Part shown: positions 18,517-29,709 of the stretch, one piece after another
Layout: each line of letters begins with the position of its first letter
How positions within the stretch are numbered: position 1 is the stretch's first letter
Assembly (NCBI GenBank): GCA_943704425.1
Contig: CALSCP010000463.1
Coordinates: 1 to 49,733 of the forward strand
Direction of reading: 5' to 3'
Length of the DNA: 49,733 bases
Source of the DNA: Ministeria vibrans ATCC 50519
Taxonomy: Eukaryota > Protista > Filasterea
Notes under the pieces: generated by a model
Told to the model about the DNA's origin: nothing
What the model saw: only the letters and a program-made list of their open reading frames with translations
Database searches by the model: none
Program-made: the position numbers and the translations under genes

Positions 18517-21038
<2,522 letters not shown>

Positions 21039-21189
21039 TTGGCTCCCTCGATCACTTTGTTCTTTGTTCTTTCTATCACTTTGTTTCTTCTCCCCCCCCC
21101 CTTCTTACTCAACTCACAACCAAACTCACTTTTTCAATATTAAAAACTTCTCTCTCTCTCTCTCTGTGTGTCTTTCATTTGTTGTTACG

Positions 21190-24100
21190 CTACAGTTTGT
21201 CCAATTCACTGAGCACGGCGTCTCTCAGTCGCTCATAGTCGGACATTTCATTGTAGATTTGTGCGCTCAGTCGCACATATCCCCTTTGCTCACCCACAGG
21301 TCCTAGGTTGCACAACACACCGAGTTGAGTGTCCCAATCGCATCCACTGTTTCTTGATATTACCGGCCACAAACACCACTGTTTCTACATCATAGTCAGA
21401 GCGCAGAGTGCGTCGCATTGCATTGCCCAGCTCACGTGTATTGATCGCCAAATGTAATGCCTACTCGGAAACTCACACACCTCGCAAATCGCCTTTCTTT
21501 TTTTTTCTTTGGTATACCTTTGGCAGTTCGAGACAGCACATGGCAGCACACATCTCAGGGGGCTGGGCAAGGCGTACTGCCCATGCGTCGCAGAGCATAC
21601 CGGCCGCAGCCATGACCAGCGTATGTAAACGAACTGCCACTCGTCCCTCATCACTCTCGTTCATCTCTGTATACCAATGTCAATTTTTAGCGCATCAGTG
21701 AGTGCCTGTCTATTGTATAAAAGTAGTTGAACCTTGAAGAAAATCGAGGGCGGTAGGCACAGCGAGCATTGCGCTATAATCGCGTGTGCCAATCCAAGCA
21801 CACTCTCGCGCCAAACCACTCCCGTAGTTGTGCGAAATGATGGGCGGATGAAGAGTGCGCTTGTCACCTGCCGAAACACACATAGGTTTCAAAATTCAAA
21901 TTCGACCAGAATACTCTGTCAGACTTACTCATGCCTGGCTTGGCGTAGAAAAAGGCAACCGAGGGTGGTGCAAATGCCCACTTGTGCAGGTTAGACACAT
22001 AGTACTCTGCACCAATGTCACGCATGCTAAGCGGATCAATCTGCCCTACTGCGTGAGCGCCATCCACAAACACCTCTTTGATGCCACTCTTGTGGCACAG
22101 CGCAACCAGCTCGACAATCGGAAGCACCTGCAACAAGAATACGAACAAAAAAAAACCACAGCAAGAAATTGGGGGAAAATTACAGCGAGAGAGTAAGAAA
22201 GGAAAAGGAGTGAGAAAGAAACAAACCACAAAGTGAAGAAGAAAGAGACAAAGAGACAGAGAGAGACATAGAAAAAGGCACAGAGAGAGACAGAGAAAGG
22301 TGAAAGATACAAAGTAGTAGAGAGAGAGGGAGCAGTCACACGCTGATGTACTAGACACTTACGAGTGCGGGAGTGCTTGTGATGTGGTCAAGAACAGCCA
22401 AGCGAATGGGCCCCTTGCAGGCAACAATAGCCCTGCGCACTGCCCGGACAATGTCGCGCGGGGACTCCACGGGAAACGGGAGGTCGGCAAAGACCAGATT
22501 GGCTCCGGCACGCTGGCAGTACTCGACAAAAGTCTGGCGAGTGGCATTGTAGCATAGGTTGAGCATGAGAATGTTGTCGCCCTTGCGCGCACGGCCCTCG
22601 TGGAAGTCCCACATGAGTGACTGTGCCACCATGGTCACGCCTGTACTTGCATTGTCGACGAGCACCACATCTGCCGTGTCGCACCCGATCAGCTGAGCGA
22701 CGGCAGCCCGTGACTCCCCCAGCCCCGACTCGAGTCCGTCAAAGTACATCTCGTCGGGCTGTGCCAGCCAGCGCAACTGATGCGCCTCTTGTGCGTCCAA
22801 AACGCATCCCGGGGGCGCCCCAAAGCTGCCGTGGTTGCAGCGGGCCGTGGTCGGGCGATGGTGCTGAAAGTGTGCGTCGCGCATCGGATGCCGCGGTCCC
22901 CTCTGCTCGCGGTACTCTCGGAAACGCTGCTGAATCGCCTTGGCAGCGTTCTCTCGCGCCGTTTGCTCTTCGGCAATCTGCTGCCGTGTCTGCTTGCCGC
23001 GCCACGATGCCTGTAGCGTCACTGCCGCCTGTTCACGTTCCATTTGAAGACGCGAGTACTCTTTGCGCGCACTGTAAGCGCGATACTGCGTCTGAATTTG
23101 CGTCGCAGCGCGCGTCTCCTGCTCGCTCTGTGCGCGGCTCTCGCGGCGTGACTTGTGTCCGCGATAATGCGCCTGGATGACAGTCGCCGACTGGTGCTGT
23201 ACGGCAATGTCTCGGCGCGTGCGGTGGCCGCGGTACGCTGCTTGTATTGAACTTGCGGCGGTGGCGCGCTCGGCTGCCTCGCGTTCGCGCTCGCGTTGCT
23301 CGTGTGCCAGTCGGGTACGTGTGTGGTGTCCACGGTAGGCACTCTGGATGCACGTGGCGGCGTGCGTTTCCTCGGCGAGCTGTGTAGCAACCTGCTGACG
23401 AGTGCGGTAACCGCGGAAATTTGATTGAATCGTCGTTGCGGCCTGATCGCGCATCGACCTCTCGTGTGCCACACTTTGTCGGTCGCGATGACCCCGAAAG
23501 CCCGACTGTATGCGCACAGCGGCGTCCTTGGCCTGTGCCAGCTCCCGACGAGCATTGCGGCCACGGACGTGCTTCTGCAGAGTAGTCGCCGCCCAAGTGC
23601 GGTCTGCGTACAGGACTGCGACCTGCTGGCGCTCGCGGAAGCCCCGGAACCACGATTGGATGAGAACGGCGGCGCGCAGACGCAATTGACGCTCGCGTCG
23701 AAGCTCCTGGGCCATGGGCGACATGGGACGGGAGCGAAGAAAGTCGTCGCGCGAGCCCATCGATGCGGACGAAGCACGCAAGCAATCTTCGGCGACGCTC
23801 GGATCAAGCTCACGGCCCTCCACTGCCTCCTTGCGATCCCACCTACGCAGTTCGAGTTGCTCGCAGACAGCCTGCGACGGCCGTTTGGTCACGGGGGAGG
23901 CCGAGGCGGGGGCGCGCGGTGGACGCCCACAGCGGTCCTTGAGCGACTTCATGGAGCCCTGACTCACGTTGAGCGGGTCCTCCCAGGCAAGACGCTGCGA
24001 GCGGGCACGGCGTGCCGGTGTCGGACTTGGCTTTGGTGCACGTGGTGCGGGCTCGGACTCTTCGTCTGGCTTCGTCTTGCGTGCCAGCACCGAGATTTCT

Positions 24101-24964
24101 TTGCGTTTCTCACGCGGTACGTATCCAGGCGGCGGTCGCGTCTTGCTGTCCACTTTGGTGGAAGCAAATACTCCACTGGCGGAGACGGGTCGCTCGCGAC
24201 TTGCAGGTCGATTGACGGGTGTCGTGGGTACTGGCGAAGGGGAGCGTGTGGCTTTGGCTTTTGATGCTGACTGGCGCACTGGCGTAGGCTGAATGTCTTT
24301 GCCAGGCCGAGCGCCGTCCGCTCCGACGTGTGATGATCGAAGGCCGGGGATGCTGTTGGAGGCGGTGGTCGAGAGTCGTTGTCTTACAGGTGCCGGTGAC
24401 GCTTTTCTTGTGGGCGCTGGCGACGGGGAGGGAGCACGATGGCGACGGGGTGATGGAGCGGACGAATTCGACGTCGCTGCAGCTGGTGCGCCTTTGTGCA
24501 CTGCACTCGAGCTCGCTGGCACGGGCGAAGGAGCCCGTGCATGCGCTGTGCCGCCGGCCCGAGGCACTGGCGAAGGTGCTCGGGCGCCAACTCCGGGTCG
24601 TGGTGAGGGTGCTCTTCGTGGCGTGGCGGCTGCAGCGGTGACACGGTGTGGTGCGTCCGCTGGAGGTCTTTGTTTGTCTCGTTGTTGCACGACCTGCGCT
24701 TGCATTCGAGCCGAACGAGACGCTGCCTTGGTTGACGTCGCACCGCGACTCGGTGCTGCACTTGTTGGAGGGGTAGGACCTATTTCCAAAGTCGTGCAAC
24801 ACGCGTAAGTCGCACAAACGCGCTGGATGCCGTCAAGGGCATTTTGGTCGTTCGTTTTTCTTTTTTGAATTTTGAATGTTACCTGTATGGACATTTCCCG
24901 GCGGTAATCTGCCCGCCGTGAGTTTTGTCAGATTCAAGGCAGGCACACCTACCCTGTCAGTCAT
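21190..24964 (-). CDS. IQ-repeat protein fused to a class-V aminotransferase-fold PLP lyase (L-cysteine desulfhydrase / Egt2 / isopenicillin-N epimerase-like)
   Basis: The large exon (~24780-22361) holds a Pro/Ser-rich region, 10 IQxxxRGxxxR-type motifs, then NHGSFG...LDHITS. Later exons give VDGAHAVGQ, SNLHKW (PLP Lys), WIGTRDYS and YVRLSAQIYN. Two small upstream exons (ATG 24964) are phase-compatible. Confidence 0.85.
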
Positions 24965-25139
24965 ACGAGAAGAACTATCTTAGAAAAAATAAATCAATGA
25001 CACTGAGTGAACTGTCATTCTGTCAACTCTGTGAAGATAGAAGAATCGATTTTTTTTAGTTGATCTTGACATTCAACAATGAATTGTAATCATTGGATTT
25101 ACTTGATATTTACGCGTGTGTCCCTTAGACCTGTAACCC

Positions 25140-28119
25140 ATGGCACCGGTCAACCTCCTCCCAAAGGTAAACACCGAGTAGCCCATGTCGTTGTCTCGCG
25201 TGACGGTGACTGACGGTCTGTGAATCCTCTCCCTCCCTCCCTCGGCTGCGGTTGCGTGTGTAGGCCGGGGAGTACTCCCAGTCCGTCGGAGTCGGCGTGG
25301 CGCTCGACGACCTCGTGCTCATGACGATCATCAACGAAAAGGTAGGGCTGCACAACAGAGGCACGACCGCCCTGACCCCAAAGGAACTGACCCCTCTCCC
25401 ATCCGACAGGAAATCATGCAGAACCTGCGCAAACGTGCCGACCGCGGAATCATCTATACGTAAGCCGCCCCCGCTGACTTTCTCGCGCCCACACCATTGT
25501 CCACATGCTCCGACACCCACTCGCTCCGACTGCGGCGCTGTTAGGCCGCGCGTCCTCTCGCCAGCGCCAGTCATTCGTTTTGCTTCTCTCCAACCACCTC
25601 CATCTCATATCTCCTTCCCCTTAGCTACATCGGCCACGTGCTCCTTGCCATGAACCCCTACAAGAAGTTGCCCATCTACGGCAAAGGTGAGACTAGCTCG
25701 TTTGAGTCGACACGGCACACTAATGGGACTCGGCAGATTTCATTCAGGGCTACACCGGTCGTTATCGCGTCGAAATGCCGCCACACATCTACTCGCTTGC
25801 CGAGGAAACCTTCCGTGACATGCTCACCGAGGAAGAGCCCCAGTGCATCATTATTAGCGGAGAAAGTGGCGCCGGCAAGACAGAGAGTGCTAAGCTGATC
25901 ATGAACTACATTGCGAATGTGTGCGGCAGTGCTAAGGGTGGCGTTGACAAGATCAAAGACATTGTGTTGCAGTCCAATCCGCTGCTGGAGGCCTTTGGCA
26001 ATGCCAAGACTCTCCGCAACAACAATAGCAGTCGCTTTGGAAAGGTACGAGCAAACGACCCACACCAAAGAGAAGGAAGGACCTAGTCCAACTTTCGTTT
26101 TTATAATATTAATAAGAAGTTTAATAATAATAATAATTATTGTTATTATATTTCATCTCACTTTTTTTCGCTTCATTTATTCTTATTATTTAACGTAGTA
26201 CGTCGAGATTTTGTTTGATCGTCATGGCTACCCGCGCGGCGGCCGCATCCGCAACTACCTCCTTGAAAAGTCGCGCATTCCATCGCAGACCAAGGGCGAG
26301 CGCAACTTCCACATCTTCTACCAGTTCTGCAAAGGAATGGTAATGCACCAAATTAGCACGCTCTACTTGCCTCACTTCACTCACTCACACAATTCAATGT
26401 ATACCATTGTGTGACAGGAGGACAAAGACCGCCAAACGCTGGGTCTGGGAAGTGCAGCAGGGGCAGTCAAGGCGTTTCGCTACCTGAGCCTTGCGGGATG
26501 CACGTCACTTGAGGGTGTCGACGACGCAGCCGAGTTTCGCCACACAGTCCATGCCATGAAGGTCGCCAACATGGGCGGCAAGACGGCTCGTGTCGTCTTT
26601 TCACTGCTTGCCGCCATTCTTCACCTGGGCAATGTTGCCTTTGAGCCTGCAAGTGCCGATGGCAGCACTTCGCGTGTCAGTCAAGACGCACAGGCGTTTC
26701 TCGATCGCGCGTGTGACCTGCTCAAGATTGACGGAGGTGCATACTCCATATAACACTCACCTCACTCACTTCACTCACCATGCGATATATCTTTTCTTTT
26801 CTTTTTTTCTACAGGGCGTTTGGTCAAGGCGCTGACGACACGGCACATTCGGACGCGCGGCGAGTCCTTCGACGTCCCCCTCAACGCACCGCAGGCGTCC
26901 AACGCACGCGACGCCGTCACCAAGACACTCTACTTCCGCGCCTTTGATTGGATTGTTGGCTGCGTCAACAGCGCTCTCGCCGCCGCCTCCACCCCCGCCG
27001 ACGGTACCGCCGCTGCCGCTGCCGACCCGGCCGAGCTCTTGGCGGTGTGTGTCCTTGACATTTACGGCTTTGAAATTTTCAAGTCCAACGGATTTGAGCA
27101 GTTTCTCATCAATTACGTCAATGAGAAGCTCCAACAGATCTTCATTGAGCTCACGCTCAAGGCAGAGCAGGTACGTCAAGCGAGACAATACCGACAGGGG
27201 GGACCTCACAAACTGGTTTGCGTTTGTTGTTGTTGTCGTTGTTTTCGCAGGAGGAATACGAACAAGAGAAGATCCAATGGACACCCATCAAGTTTTTCAA
27301 CAACAAAGTCGTCTGCGATCTGATTGAGGCGAAGAAGCCGCAGCCGGGCGTGCTGGCTATCCTCGATGACACTTGCGCCACGCTGCACGCGGACACGAAG
27401 AACGCCGACTCGACGTTTGTCGGCAAGGCAACGACCTTTCACAGCCAACACGCGCACTTTATGGCGACCGACCGCGGCTTTGTCATCAAGCACTACGCCG
27501 GCAATGTCGAGTACACATCACGCGGCTTCTGCGACGCCAATCTCGACTCGCTCTTTGTCGATCTGGTGGCGGTGCTCGCCGAGTCGCGTCACAAGTTGCT
27601 GAGCGTGCTGTTTCCTCAGAGCGAACTGGAGGAGTTGCAGCAGCAAGAAGGGCGCAAGCGACCGACGACGGTGGGCCACAAAATGAAGACGCAGTGTGCG
27701 CAGCTGGTGACGGACCTGATGGCGACCAACCCACACTATGTGCGCTGTCTCAAGCCCAACGACACCAAACAGGCGGGGGTCTTTGACGACGCACGCATCG
27801 AGCACCAGTGCAAGTACCTGGGCCTACTCGAGAACGTTCGTGTGCGCCGCGCTGGCTTTGCCTACCGTCAAGACTTCCATCGCTTCAACCACCGCTACCT
27901 CATGCTGCTGTCGGACCGCGACCGTGCACGCGTTGACCGTCCTGGCGTGTCCGACCGCGATGTCAGCAAGGCCATGCTTAAGCTGCTTATGCCCCAGCTC
28001 AAGGGTGTCGTTGCTGACACCGAGTTTCAGCTCGGCACTACCAAAATGTTCATCAAACAAGTATTGTTTTCTAGTCCACTCCCTCCTCCCTCTTTTTCTT
28101 CGTACTAATATAAATGTGT

Positions 28120-28151
<32 letters not shown>

Positions 28152-29698
28152 TATAGCCTGAGAGTGTGTTTGCAGTGGAGCAACTGCGCGTGAAGCATTT
28201 GGACGGGTGTGCGGCGCGCATCCAACGAGCATGGCGGGCTTTCTTGCAGCGCCGGCACTTTATCAAGCTGCGTCTGGGTGCCGTCAAGTACCTGAGCAAG
28301 CGCAAGGAGCGCCGACGCGACACTCTGCTGCGGCCCTTCACAGGCATTCACTTGCCCTACCACTCGACCAAAGACGAGCGCATGTGCAAGCTGCGCCAGT
28401 GCCTAGCCGACTGCACTGGCCTGGGCGTCCCTGCCACCGTAGGACAGGTCATTTACGCCGACAACTGCAAGGTGCGCCGTAAAAATACGACTGGAAGGGG
28501 GTAAGCTTACGTTTATGTTTAGGTGCTGCGAGTGAATGGGACAGGGATGGAGGAGGACCCATGCACGCTGGTGTTGAGCACGTCGGGTGTGTATATTGCC
28601 GAGTGGCGCCAGTTGCCGGCGGTGATGCAGAAGAACATGGTGACCAATGTGGTGTGGGCGGGCGCACATGAGCGCCTCAAGCGACCTGCAACTGCACCCG
28701 TCTTTGCCATGCGACGCCACATTCCACTGAGTCTGCTCGACAGTGTGTCGCTGTCGCCGTACGCCGACAATGTGATTGTACTGCACGTGAAAGACCGACC
28801 CAATGGCACACCGCCCGTGTGGACTCCCAATTCGGATGTGGTTGACTGTGCACGGTGCAAGCGCAAGTTTTGGTTGTTTCTACGTCGCCATCACTGCCGG
28901 CAGTGTGGCACGGTCTACTGCGACGAGTGTGTACCCGAGGGTGTGGGGTGTGTGCCAGACCGCAGCATTGACACGCCCGTACGCATCTGTGTGGGTTGCT
29001 GGGGGCGCGAGAGCCTCGACGCGTGGCAGGACTATGCGATTGTGGTGGATTCCAAGACAGAGCTGATGGCGCTGCTGATGGACGCGAGTGGCATGACCAT
29101 GGAACGATCGGGTCTGCCACCAATCAAGGCCAACATTGCCCCCGAGATCATGTACAAGGGCCCGTCGACGGTGAGCGCCGGCAGTGAGGTGGCGACGCGT
29201 TCGTCTCGTCGGCTACAGTTCACACGCGATCCTCGCATGACCGAAATGGCAGTGCGCGTGACGGGCGCCGGAACCATTTCGGTGGGTCCTGGCGTCCCTG
29301 TCGAGTTGGTGGAGCAGCAGCGCAAGGCGGAGGCGCGACGGCGCAAAGAGCGTCTGCGACGACTCGAGCACGAGGCAGAGCAGCGTCGACTGGCCGAGCA
29401 GCAGCGAGCGGAGGCACGCGAGAAGGAACGCAAGCGCCGCATCAAGGAGAAGAAGGCGCGTCGTGCGGCGGAGCGAGCCACAGCGGCGGAAACATCGGCT
29501 GCGGAGGCGTCCGTGTCGGCCGAGAAGAAGGCGAAGCGTGAGGCGCGCAAGAAGAAGATGGCTAAGGCGGCCCCAGTGCAGGCGGTGGCGGTCGTTAAGT
29601 GTGGCGACTGTGGCTGCGACGACTTCCAGCCGCACACCTTCAAGAAGAACACGTGCAATGTGTGCTACCACGACCACGCCGCCACGAGTGCTGTCTAA
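25140..29698 (+). CDS. Class I myosin with IQ, TH1 interrupted by FYVE, charged helix and a C-terminal Cys/His motif
   Basis: [10 protein letters not shown]-loop, [69 protein letters not shown] (myosin-I type), [14 protein letters not shown], and FYVE WTPNSD...RRHHCRQCG...RIC. Confidence 0.92.
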
Positions 29699-29709
29699 TT
29701 ATCAAAGAA

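Follow-up and report, generated by a model that had tools for sequence, protein, structure and literature searches.

A candidate fusion of an IQ-motif array to an LCD/Egt2-type C-S lyase in Ministeria vibrans, with a possible link to Ca2+

Arrays of IQ motifs are components of lever arms or scaffolds of motors, channels, GTPase-activating proteins, guanine-nucleotide exchange factors and ASPM-type proteins. Can such an array be also part of an enzyme of sulfur metabolism? The question is raised by a gene residing in the contig CALSCP010000463.1 of Ministeria vibrans, analysed as a single window of 49,733 nucleotides (nt), to which all the positions given below refer. The window has features typical of a eukaryote: its introns are short and of the GT-AG type, microsatellites of the (TC)n and (CA)n kinds occur, and genes lie close together. 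According to a preliminary description of this DNA, ten IQ motifs are fused directly to a pyridoxal phosphate (PLP)-dependent lyase, belonging to the subfamily which includes plant cysteine desulfhydrase (LCD) and fungal Egt2. The reading that we favour, and hold to be probable with moderate confidence, is that of a single fused gene, in which an IQ segment has been joined 5' of a standalone LCD/Egt2-type C-S lyase, and which would encode a Ca2+-linked IQ-lyase protein.

The gene lies on the minus strand (24894-21190), and is made up of six exons separated by introns all of the GT-AG type, for a total of 1074 codons plus the stop (3225 nt). Exon 1 alone spans 844 codons, and hosts in a single frame a basic N-terminus, the IQ array and the N-terminus of the lyase. 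The corresponding open reading frame (ORF), 22351..24894, is uninterrupted over 847 residues (858 from stop to stop), and a GTAAGT donor is found immediately 3' of codon 844 (exon 1 end 22363), ahead of the in-frame stop 22353-22351. The lyase had been described as part of one uninterrupted frame. This holds for the passage from the IQ array to the NHGSFG motif, which is comprised within exon 1, but not for the rest of the enzyme, which spans five more short exons.

The join between the two moieties is tight. The predicted IQ helix ends at residue 664, Met671 (MRDAHF) follows after a linker of six residues, and NHGSFG begins at residue 687 (window position 22836). The peptide across the junction reads EQRGPRHPMRDAHF, and a further stretch spanning it reads EQRGPRHPMRDAHFQHH. 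Homology to standalone enzymes begins exactly at Met671, and homologues P0053 and P0057 begin 4-5 residues, P0045 12 residues, before the equivalent of this methionine. Because standalone homologues begin at that position, Met671 probably marks the original start of the lyase, now internal. Upstream of it there is no stop codon, no spacer, and no room for a terminator or a promoter. The junction is free of Ns, repeats and breaks in composition. Pooled codon counts of the IQ and the lyase parts are correlated (r=0.64), and both correlate with those of other genes of the genome (r=0.54-0.71); GC content at third codon positions is 0.67 and 0.63 in the IQ and lyase parts, respectively. The locus is single-copy, and neither half was found elsewhere in the assembly. 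Judging from the sequence, the fusion is real at the DNA level, because the frame is kept, stop codons and spacers are missing, codon usage is shared and no second copy of either half occurs. The genome is compact, as only 244 bp separate the gene from a divergent myosin gene, and ~155 bp from a convergent carboxypeptidase gene, so that two genes could plausibly have been joined by losing the short spacer between them.

The Pfam IQ family (PF00612) is matched in exon 1 with E=3.5e-41 (135.5 bits), in seven separately significant stretches. By using the strict pattern [ILV]Q...R[GAE]...[RK], nine motifs were identified, at residues 412, 439, 462, 489, 516, 550, 573, 600 and 627, the successive spacings being 27, 23, 27, 27, 34, 23, 27 and 27 residues. 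In shuffled versions of the same segment, strict matches were on average 0.17, and never exceeded three. Each strict motif is preceded by AA-x-x, as in the myosin/ASPM repeats (AAxxIQxxxRGxxxR), and eight motifs of the array are of the complete IQxxxRGxxxR type. All the ten strings formerly quoted as IQ motifs are present. Only nine of them are canonical, the tenth, IQQRFREYREQR at residue 654, being degenerate. No tandem repeat was detected in the array at the DNA level, which indicates that the array is old and diverged, the product neither of a recent expansion nor of assembly stutter. An AlphaFold2 (AF2) model features long helices at residues 400-465, 475-557 and 565-664, with confidence (pLDDT) values mostly of 64-91, weak evidence since the model was built from a single sequence. 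The region which precedes the array (residues 1-399) is unique in the genome, has a pI of 11.45, is rich in A, P, S and R, and carries 17 SP/TP sites and a recurrent APSPVP motif. No Pfam family was matched at E<=1 within residues 1-398, and the basic, Ser/Pro-rich N-terminus is probably disordered. The Pfam scans revealed IQ and Aminotran_5 matches only, and no CH, ARM/ASH or motor domain.

When used to search its own genome, the IQ array matched an ASPM-like gene (37% identity) and C1716. The notion that the array is a copy of the neighbouring myosin was rejected, as myosin was not matched in this search. The ASPM-like gene, which hosts the IQ array closest to that of the window, maps at C1127:24820-28494 on the minus strand, and includes a calponin-homology (CH) segment, at least 15 IQ repeats (IQCAFR..., IQGAFR...) and, at the C-terminus, an ARM-like region; a short stretch of Ns (XX in translation) breaks the sequence.

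The enzyme moiety is complete. The lyase part of exon 1 is sufficient to match Aminotran_5 (PF00266) above threshold (24.4 bits, cut-off 21.5, E=1.8e-5), and phmmer matches to homologues reach 172 bits (E=1e-45). Peptides encoded by each of the exons, E1 to E6, were searched and aligned separately against homologues. The six peptides cover in order residues 16-406 of the 419 of P0045 from Amoebidium parasiticum, with no truncation of the domain, and the same order is observed against Capsaspora and plant LCD sequences. The closest named homologues are found in the holozoan protists Amoebidium (45% identity) and Capsaspora (43-44%), and plant LCDs are 42-50% identical. The conserved blocks DGAH, SNLHKW, WIGTRDYSA and GYVRLSAQIYN are intact; VFVDGAHAVGQ and SNLHKW, both in exon 2, align column for column with P0045, P0047, P0048 and P0007. 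The lyase part of exon 1 aligns also to the Neurospora crassa Egt2 (5uts) from residue 45 (E=1.8e-10). The tyrosine equivalent to Egt2 Y134 is kept, within LCYN, as is the C-terminal arginine of the substrate-carboxylate block. Both the retention of the PLP lysine, in SNLHKW, and the membership in the LCD/Egt2 subfamily had been correctly recognised. Since the PLP lysine and the DGAH, WIGTRDYSA and GYVRLS blocks are all in place, the lyase looks catalytically competent. Other approaches were less informative. A feature search of the ESM Atlas retrieved only clusters of bacterial Aminotran_5 fragments, with scores (0.80-0.81) that do not reach the threshold for a lead; for the truncated lyase part, pLDDT values of the AF2 model are 30-40, too low for use; a word search with residues 671-844 alone gave no match, and is uninformative, as the same stretch gave E values down to 1e-43 in a wider word search.

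Besides the window gene, only one LCD-type copy was identified in the genome. It maps on C1502 (197-1102, plus strand), is 40-42% identical to the window lyase, and encodes a standalone protein beginning with a signal-peptide-like leader, MRTFLALLSVPLFVVSV... A weak Aminotran_5 match was also noticed at C1493:6306-6602 (minus strand), within an open frame of 1258 codons, which may be another large fusion, including a PLP domain of class V such as that of Moco sulfurases.

Does the locus encode one protein, or two? A standalone lyase of ~404 residues might be started internally at Met671, and the IQ part be a separate product, either minor or regulatory, such as a long 5' leader or an alternative isoform. 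The coincidence of Met671 with the onset of homology, the starts of P0045, P0053 and P0057 close to the same point, and the absence of LCD-type genes other than the C1502 paralogue are all compatible with such a scheme. It is countered by the lack of an in-frame stop before intron 1, which means that an IQ-only product would need alternative splicing, unseen so far, and by the array itself, well preserved and in the same frame as the lyase, which points to selection acting on the fused reading frame. Two products from this locus are, on balance, rather unlikely. Much less credit is given to an assembly artefact, by which two unrelated or adjacent genes would have been joined, or frame-shifted, at ~22880-22920. 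The fragmentation of the genome and the failure to find the same architecture among the matches inspected could raise this suspicion, but the clean junction, the codon usage that both sides share with the rest of the genome, the frame kept across the join and the lack of a second copy of either half all contradict it, as do the genes flanking both sides, which have the same intron style and microsatellites. This is the least probable of the explanations considered.

A further possibility accepts the fusion, and denies that the arm regulates the enzyme. The lyase could serve mainly to dimerise an IQ scaffold protein of the ASPM type, or the arm could be just a reservoir of calmodulin, enzyme activity being incidental. 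Class-V enzymes are obligate dimers, the best matches of the array are ASPM-type proteins, and the nearest IQ array in the genome is in a gene of this type, with its CH domain, many IQ motifs and C-terminal ARM-like region. However, all the catalytic hallmarks of the lyase are kept, and the 42-64% identity to homologues of the active type points to selection on catalysis. Such a role seems quite improbable, barely less so than an artefact. We thus return to the single fused gene. Some data do weigh against it. Met671 is placed exactly at the start of standalone enzymes, so that the lyase alone could be expressed from an internal promoter; the assembly (29.7 Mb) is split into 2860 contigs, and has the look of a metagenome-assembled protist genome; the best match of the lyase is only 45% identical. 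Neither a metagenome scan for the protein pattern nor one for the exact 28-nt junction pattern gave a match, though records of the window itself, or nearby ones, may be masked. Finally, EF-hand matches in the genome are at least 50, and a canonical calmodulin gene was not located, the best matches, once translated, being centrin-like, calcineurin-B-like and others.

How could a protein of this sort have been formed, and how could it work? A gene segment encoding an IQ array would have been added 5' of a standalone lyase gene of the LCD/Egt2 type, the old start codon surviving as Met671. The predicted product, 1074 residues long, would consist of a disordered basic N-terminus, a helical IQ arm of ~265 residues and, some 6-10 residues further on, the class-V lyase. 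With its ten IQ sites set on ~265 helical residues, the arm would be a rod of ~40 nm, similar to the neck of myosin-V or ASPM, plausibly loaded with calmodulin or calmodulin-like light chains. At sites of the complete IQxxxRGxxxR type, calmodulin or light chains are bound even when Ca2+ is low. The lyase is expected to be a homodimer, as other members of the family, from which two light-chain-decorated arms would protrude, ending in basic, phosphorylatable tails. Arm and basic N-terminus may place the dimer on a partner, or on a structure such as the cytoskeleton. Additionally, or alternatively, a Ca2+-dependent rearrangement, or release, of the calmodulin nearest to the enzyme may alter lyase activity, as the last IQ site would be located only ~10-15 residues from the first conserved residues of the lyase. 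Ca2+ would be in this way tied directly to C-S cleavage, most likely the conversion of L-cysteine to H2S, pyruvate and NH3, or the cleavage of a cysteine (sulfoxide) conjugate. The structure of the gene, its two domains and the intact catalytic residues are seen in the DNA; we infer the single transcript, the binding of calmodulin or other light chains, the control by Ca2+, the cytoskeletal tethering, the substrate and the production of H2S.

The assignment of the lyase to a pathway depends in part on what else the genome encodes. The enzyme matches plant LCDs (E down to 1e-43) much better than Egt2 (E=1.8e-10), and on grounds of similarity cysteine desulfhydrase is the role assigned by default. 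Synthesis of ergothioneine, the function of fungal Egt2 evoked in the preliminary description, has lost ground. Neither an Egt1-type methyltransferase (PF10017) nor DinB_2 was matched in an exon-by-exon search of the incomplete assembly. In turn, an intron-containing gene on C31 (98833-100430, minus strand), which encodes an FGE-sulfatase domain, corresponds to OvoA rather than to Egt1, as three exon pieces match positions 36-444 of TIGR04344 (238, 124 and 115 bits). The ovothiol pathway is thus probably present in this organism, and since OvoA was found, and an Egt1-type methyltransferase was not, a role in ergothioneine synthesis appears unlikely.

The presence of OvoA makes the IQ-lyase gene a candidate for the eukaryotic ovothiol lyase. 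The fused enzyme could cleave 5-histidylcysteine sulfoxide, under direct Ca2+/calmodulin control. Egt2, a relative of the window lyase, cleaves the corresponding sulfoxide in ergothioneine synthesis, and the combination of OvoA with the lack of an Egt1-type match points in the same direction. An OvoB-like gene has been reported to be missing in metazoans other than Hydrozoa (PMC8433421), which may be counted in favour as well. Yet, the job could be done by the secreted-type paralogue on C1502, or by one of several class-I/II aminotransferases of the genome, and, to our knowledge, angiosperms keep LCD-type genes while having neither OvoA nor Egt1. OvoB is the bacterial ovothiol beta-lyase, with a class I/II aminotransferase fold (PDB 5Z0Q). 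In a search for a bacterial-type OvoB, none of the class-I/II aminotransferase fragments of the genome had PatB C-S lyase as best family. The window lyase belongs to class V (PF00266), not to PF00155. It is not a member of the OvoB family, and could be at most a functional analogue. All in all, this specific assignment is speculative and quite improbable.

Whether similar proteins occur in other organisms was assessed by a HMMER scan of 1.84 billion cluster representatives, carried out by using as a query three IQ motifs plus the N-terminus of the lyase. The protein collections scanned do not include the genome to which the window belongs. Matches were 1830, and the best 150 were inspected: in none of them does an IQ array reside upstream of the lyase. 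An NHGSFG-type motif is present in 128 of these 150, at a median distance of 28.5 residues from the N-terminus, in keeping with the earlier statement that relatives are normally standalone enzymes. Three lyase-type matches carry a single chance hit to a loose IQ pattern, the lyase motif being only 15-30 residues from the N-terminus; other matches are IQ-rich and lack the lyase motif. Leaders longer than 100 residues precede the NHGSFG motif in 13 of the 128, and are acidic/Gly-rich, Ser-rich or unrelated. A word search retrieved no protein with both PF00612 and PF00266. No other protein combining IQ and Aminotran_5 was thus found, either among word-search matches or among the 150 sequences inspected. 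An exact look-up of the 847-residue ORF gave no record, and a search of the literature for IQ motifs and cysteine desulfhydrase together found nothing. The combination of IQ array and lyase appears new, its parts being themselves known.

Additions at the N-terminus are not exclusive to the window gene. In Riccia sorocarpa P0003 (1141 residues), a J domain is found ahead of an LCD-type lyase, and long N-terminal additions, some acidic/Gly-rich, are present in P0082 (from a Logan assembly), P0075, P0095, P0097 and P0085. Such additions stop immediately ahead of the F-x-HH...NNGSFG start, and fusion at the N-terminus seems to have recurred in this family of lyases.

The organisation of the gene is reported in Table 1. 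The segment 21190-23690, originally assigned to the gene, matches at 21190 the end of the TAG stop codon (21192-21190), but the gene reaches further 5', as far as the ATG at 24894. This start is uncertain, and a later methionine, such as residue 64, may be used instead. A short 5' intron (24882-24780) was considered, and rejected because its removal would put the preceding codons out of frame with the IQ ORF.

Table 1. Features of the IQ-lyase gene and of its 5' flank, with the alignment of exon peptides to P0045 (Amoebidium parasiticum, 419 residues)
Feature	Position	Strand	Evidence	P0045 residues	Identity to P0045
Exon 1, residues 1-399, low-complexity basic N-terminus	23698..24894	-	composition, no Pfam family		
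Exon 1, residues 400-664, IQ array (9 canonical + 1 degenerate)	22903..23697	-	PF00612, motif pattern, helix model		
Junction, 6-residue linker (QRGPRHP region) and Met671 (codon 22884-22882)	22882..22902	-	alignment with standalone homologues		
Exon 1, residues 672-844, N-terminal third of predicted class-V PLP lyase (NHGSFG, DNASTG, Tyr in LCYN)	22363..22881	-	Aminotran_5, Egt2 5uts and P0045 alignments	16-185 (E1)	45%
Intron 1, GT...AG, 235 nt, pyrimidine/TC-rich, contains in-frame stop 22353-22351	22128..22362	-	sequence; exon order on homologues		
Exon 2, VFVDGAHAVGQ (PLP-pyridine Asp) and SNLHKW (Schiff-base Lys, codon 21983-21981)	21929..22127	-	homologue alignment	186-248 (E2)	59% (E=9e-27)
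Exon 3, conserved block HPPIISHNYGSGL...WIGTRDYSA	21733..21867	-	58-64% identity to P0045, P0047, P0048	254-291 (E3)	58%
Exon 4	21518..21666	-	alignment to P0045	301-341 (E4)	41%
Exon 5, weakest similarity	21364..21460	-	GT-AG sites, frame, order on homologues	355-369 (E5)	40% (E=0.01)
Exon 6, GYVRLSAQIYN (substrate-carboxylate Arg block) and stop TAG	21190..21302	-	alignment to P0045	374-406 (E6)	64%
Intergenic region to divergent myosin-I gene, putative shared promoter	24895..25138	.	244 bp, sequence		

The divergent neighbour is a myosin-I gene (25139-29700, plus strand), which starts with M-A-P-V-N-L-L-P-K followed by a GT donor, 244 bp from the ATG of the IQ-lyase gene. Both proteins are expected to use calmodulin-type light chains, and the two genes may have a bidirectional promoter in common. 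On the opposite side, a serine carboxypeptidase gene (18750-21040, plus strand) is oriented convergently with the IQ-lyase gene; its final exon ends with ...AGHMVP..., ~155 bp from the lyase stop, and (CA)n and (TC)n microsatellites crowd its introns. Elsewhere in the genome, an intronless HSP70 gene (C2175) has a 100% identical counterpart, an ORF carried by a 2.7-kb contig from the European Nucleotide Archive (ENA) metagenome ERZ23497041 (SCHR19-1_SAMN09406010_METAG scaffold_8778), the identity to the other listed matches, mostly animal and plant, being ~61-73%.

Among the matches inspected, no IQ array was found on a PLP-dependent enzyme metabolising sulfur. If made, the fusion protein would provide a hard-wired link between Ca2+/calmodulin and C-S cleavage, yielding H2S, persulfide or thiohistidine. 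It would be also a simple, one-polypeptide system, which could show whether LCD-type enzymes are allosterically controllable from the N-terminus, which is also where unrelated extensions have been acquired in several other lineages.

The known systems closest to the window protein are the class-V PLP lyases of the same subfamily, as plant LCD (At3g62130 type, e.g. SlLCD1), Capsaspora CAOG_05033 and Amoebidium EP00123_P021960. They are 42-50% identical to the window lyase over the part encoded by exon 1, with values as high as 64% in the exons that follow, and share with it, in the same order, the motifs NHGSFG, DNA[ST]T, DGAH, SNLHKW, WIGTRDYSA and GY[AV]R[IL]S. In contrast to the window protein, which has ~670 extra N-terminal residues including the ten IQ motifs, these homologues are 409-480 residues long, and have short N-termini. 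In plants, the link of LCD to Ca2+ and calmodulin is known only at the transcriptional level, as CaM2 acts through the transcription factor TGA3 rather than by binding to LCD itself (PMC8585011). Fungal Egt2, the hercynylcysteine sulfoxide lyase (PDB 5uts, 5v12), belongs to the same fold and family, and keeps the NHGSFG block and Tyr134, but is more distant than LCD. The other N-terminally extended LCD-type lyases (P0003, P0082, P0075 and P0095) carry their appendages at the same site, none with IQ motifs. Myosin necks and ASPM resemble the window array for the tandem AAxxIQxxxRGxxxR units, set at 23-27-residue spacing on a continuous helix. Unlike them, the window array ends in a metabolic enzyme, and is not accompanied by motor, CH or ARM domains. 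Control of a fold-type-I PLP enzyme by a calmodulin-binding segment of its own has a precedent in plant glutamate decarboxylase (PMC3849887, PMC11978549). The two proteins are non-homologous outside the PLP fold, and glutamate decarboxylase carries a single C-terminal, non-IQ autoinhibitory helix which binds calmodulin, whereas the window protein carries ten IQ motifs at the N-terminal side of the enzyme.

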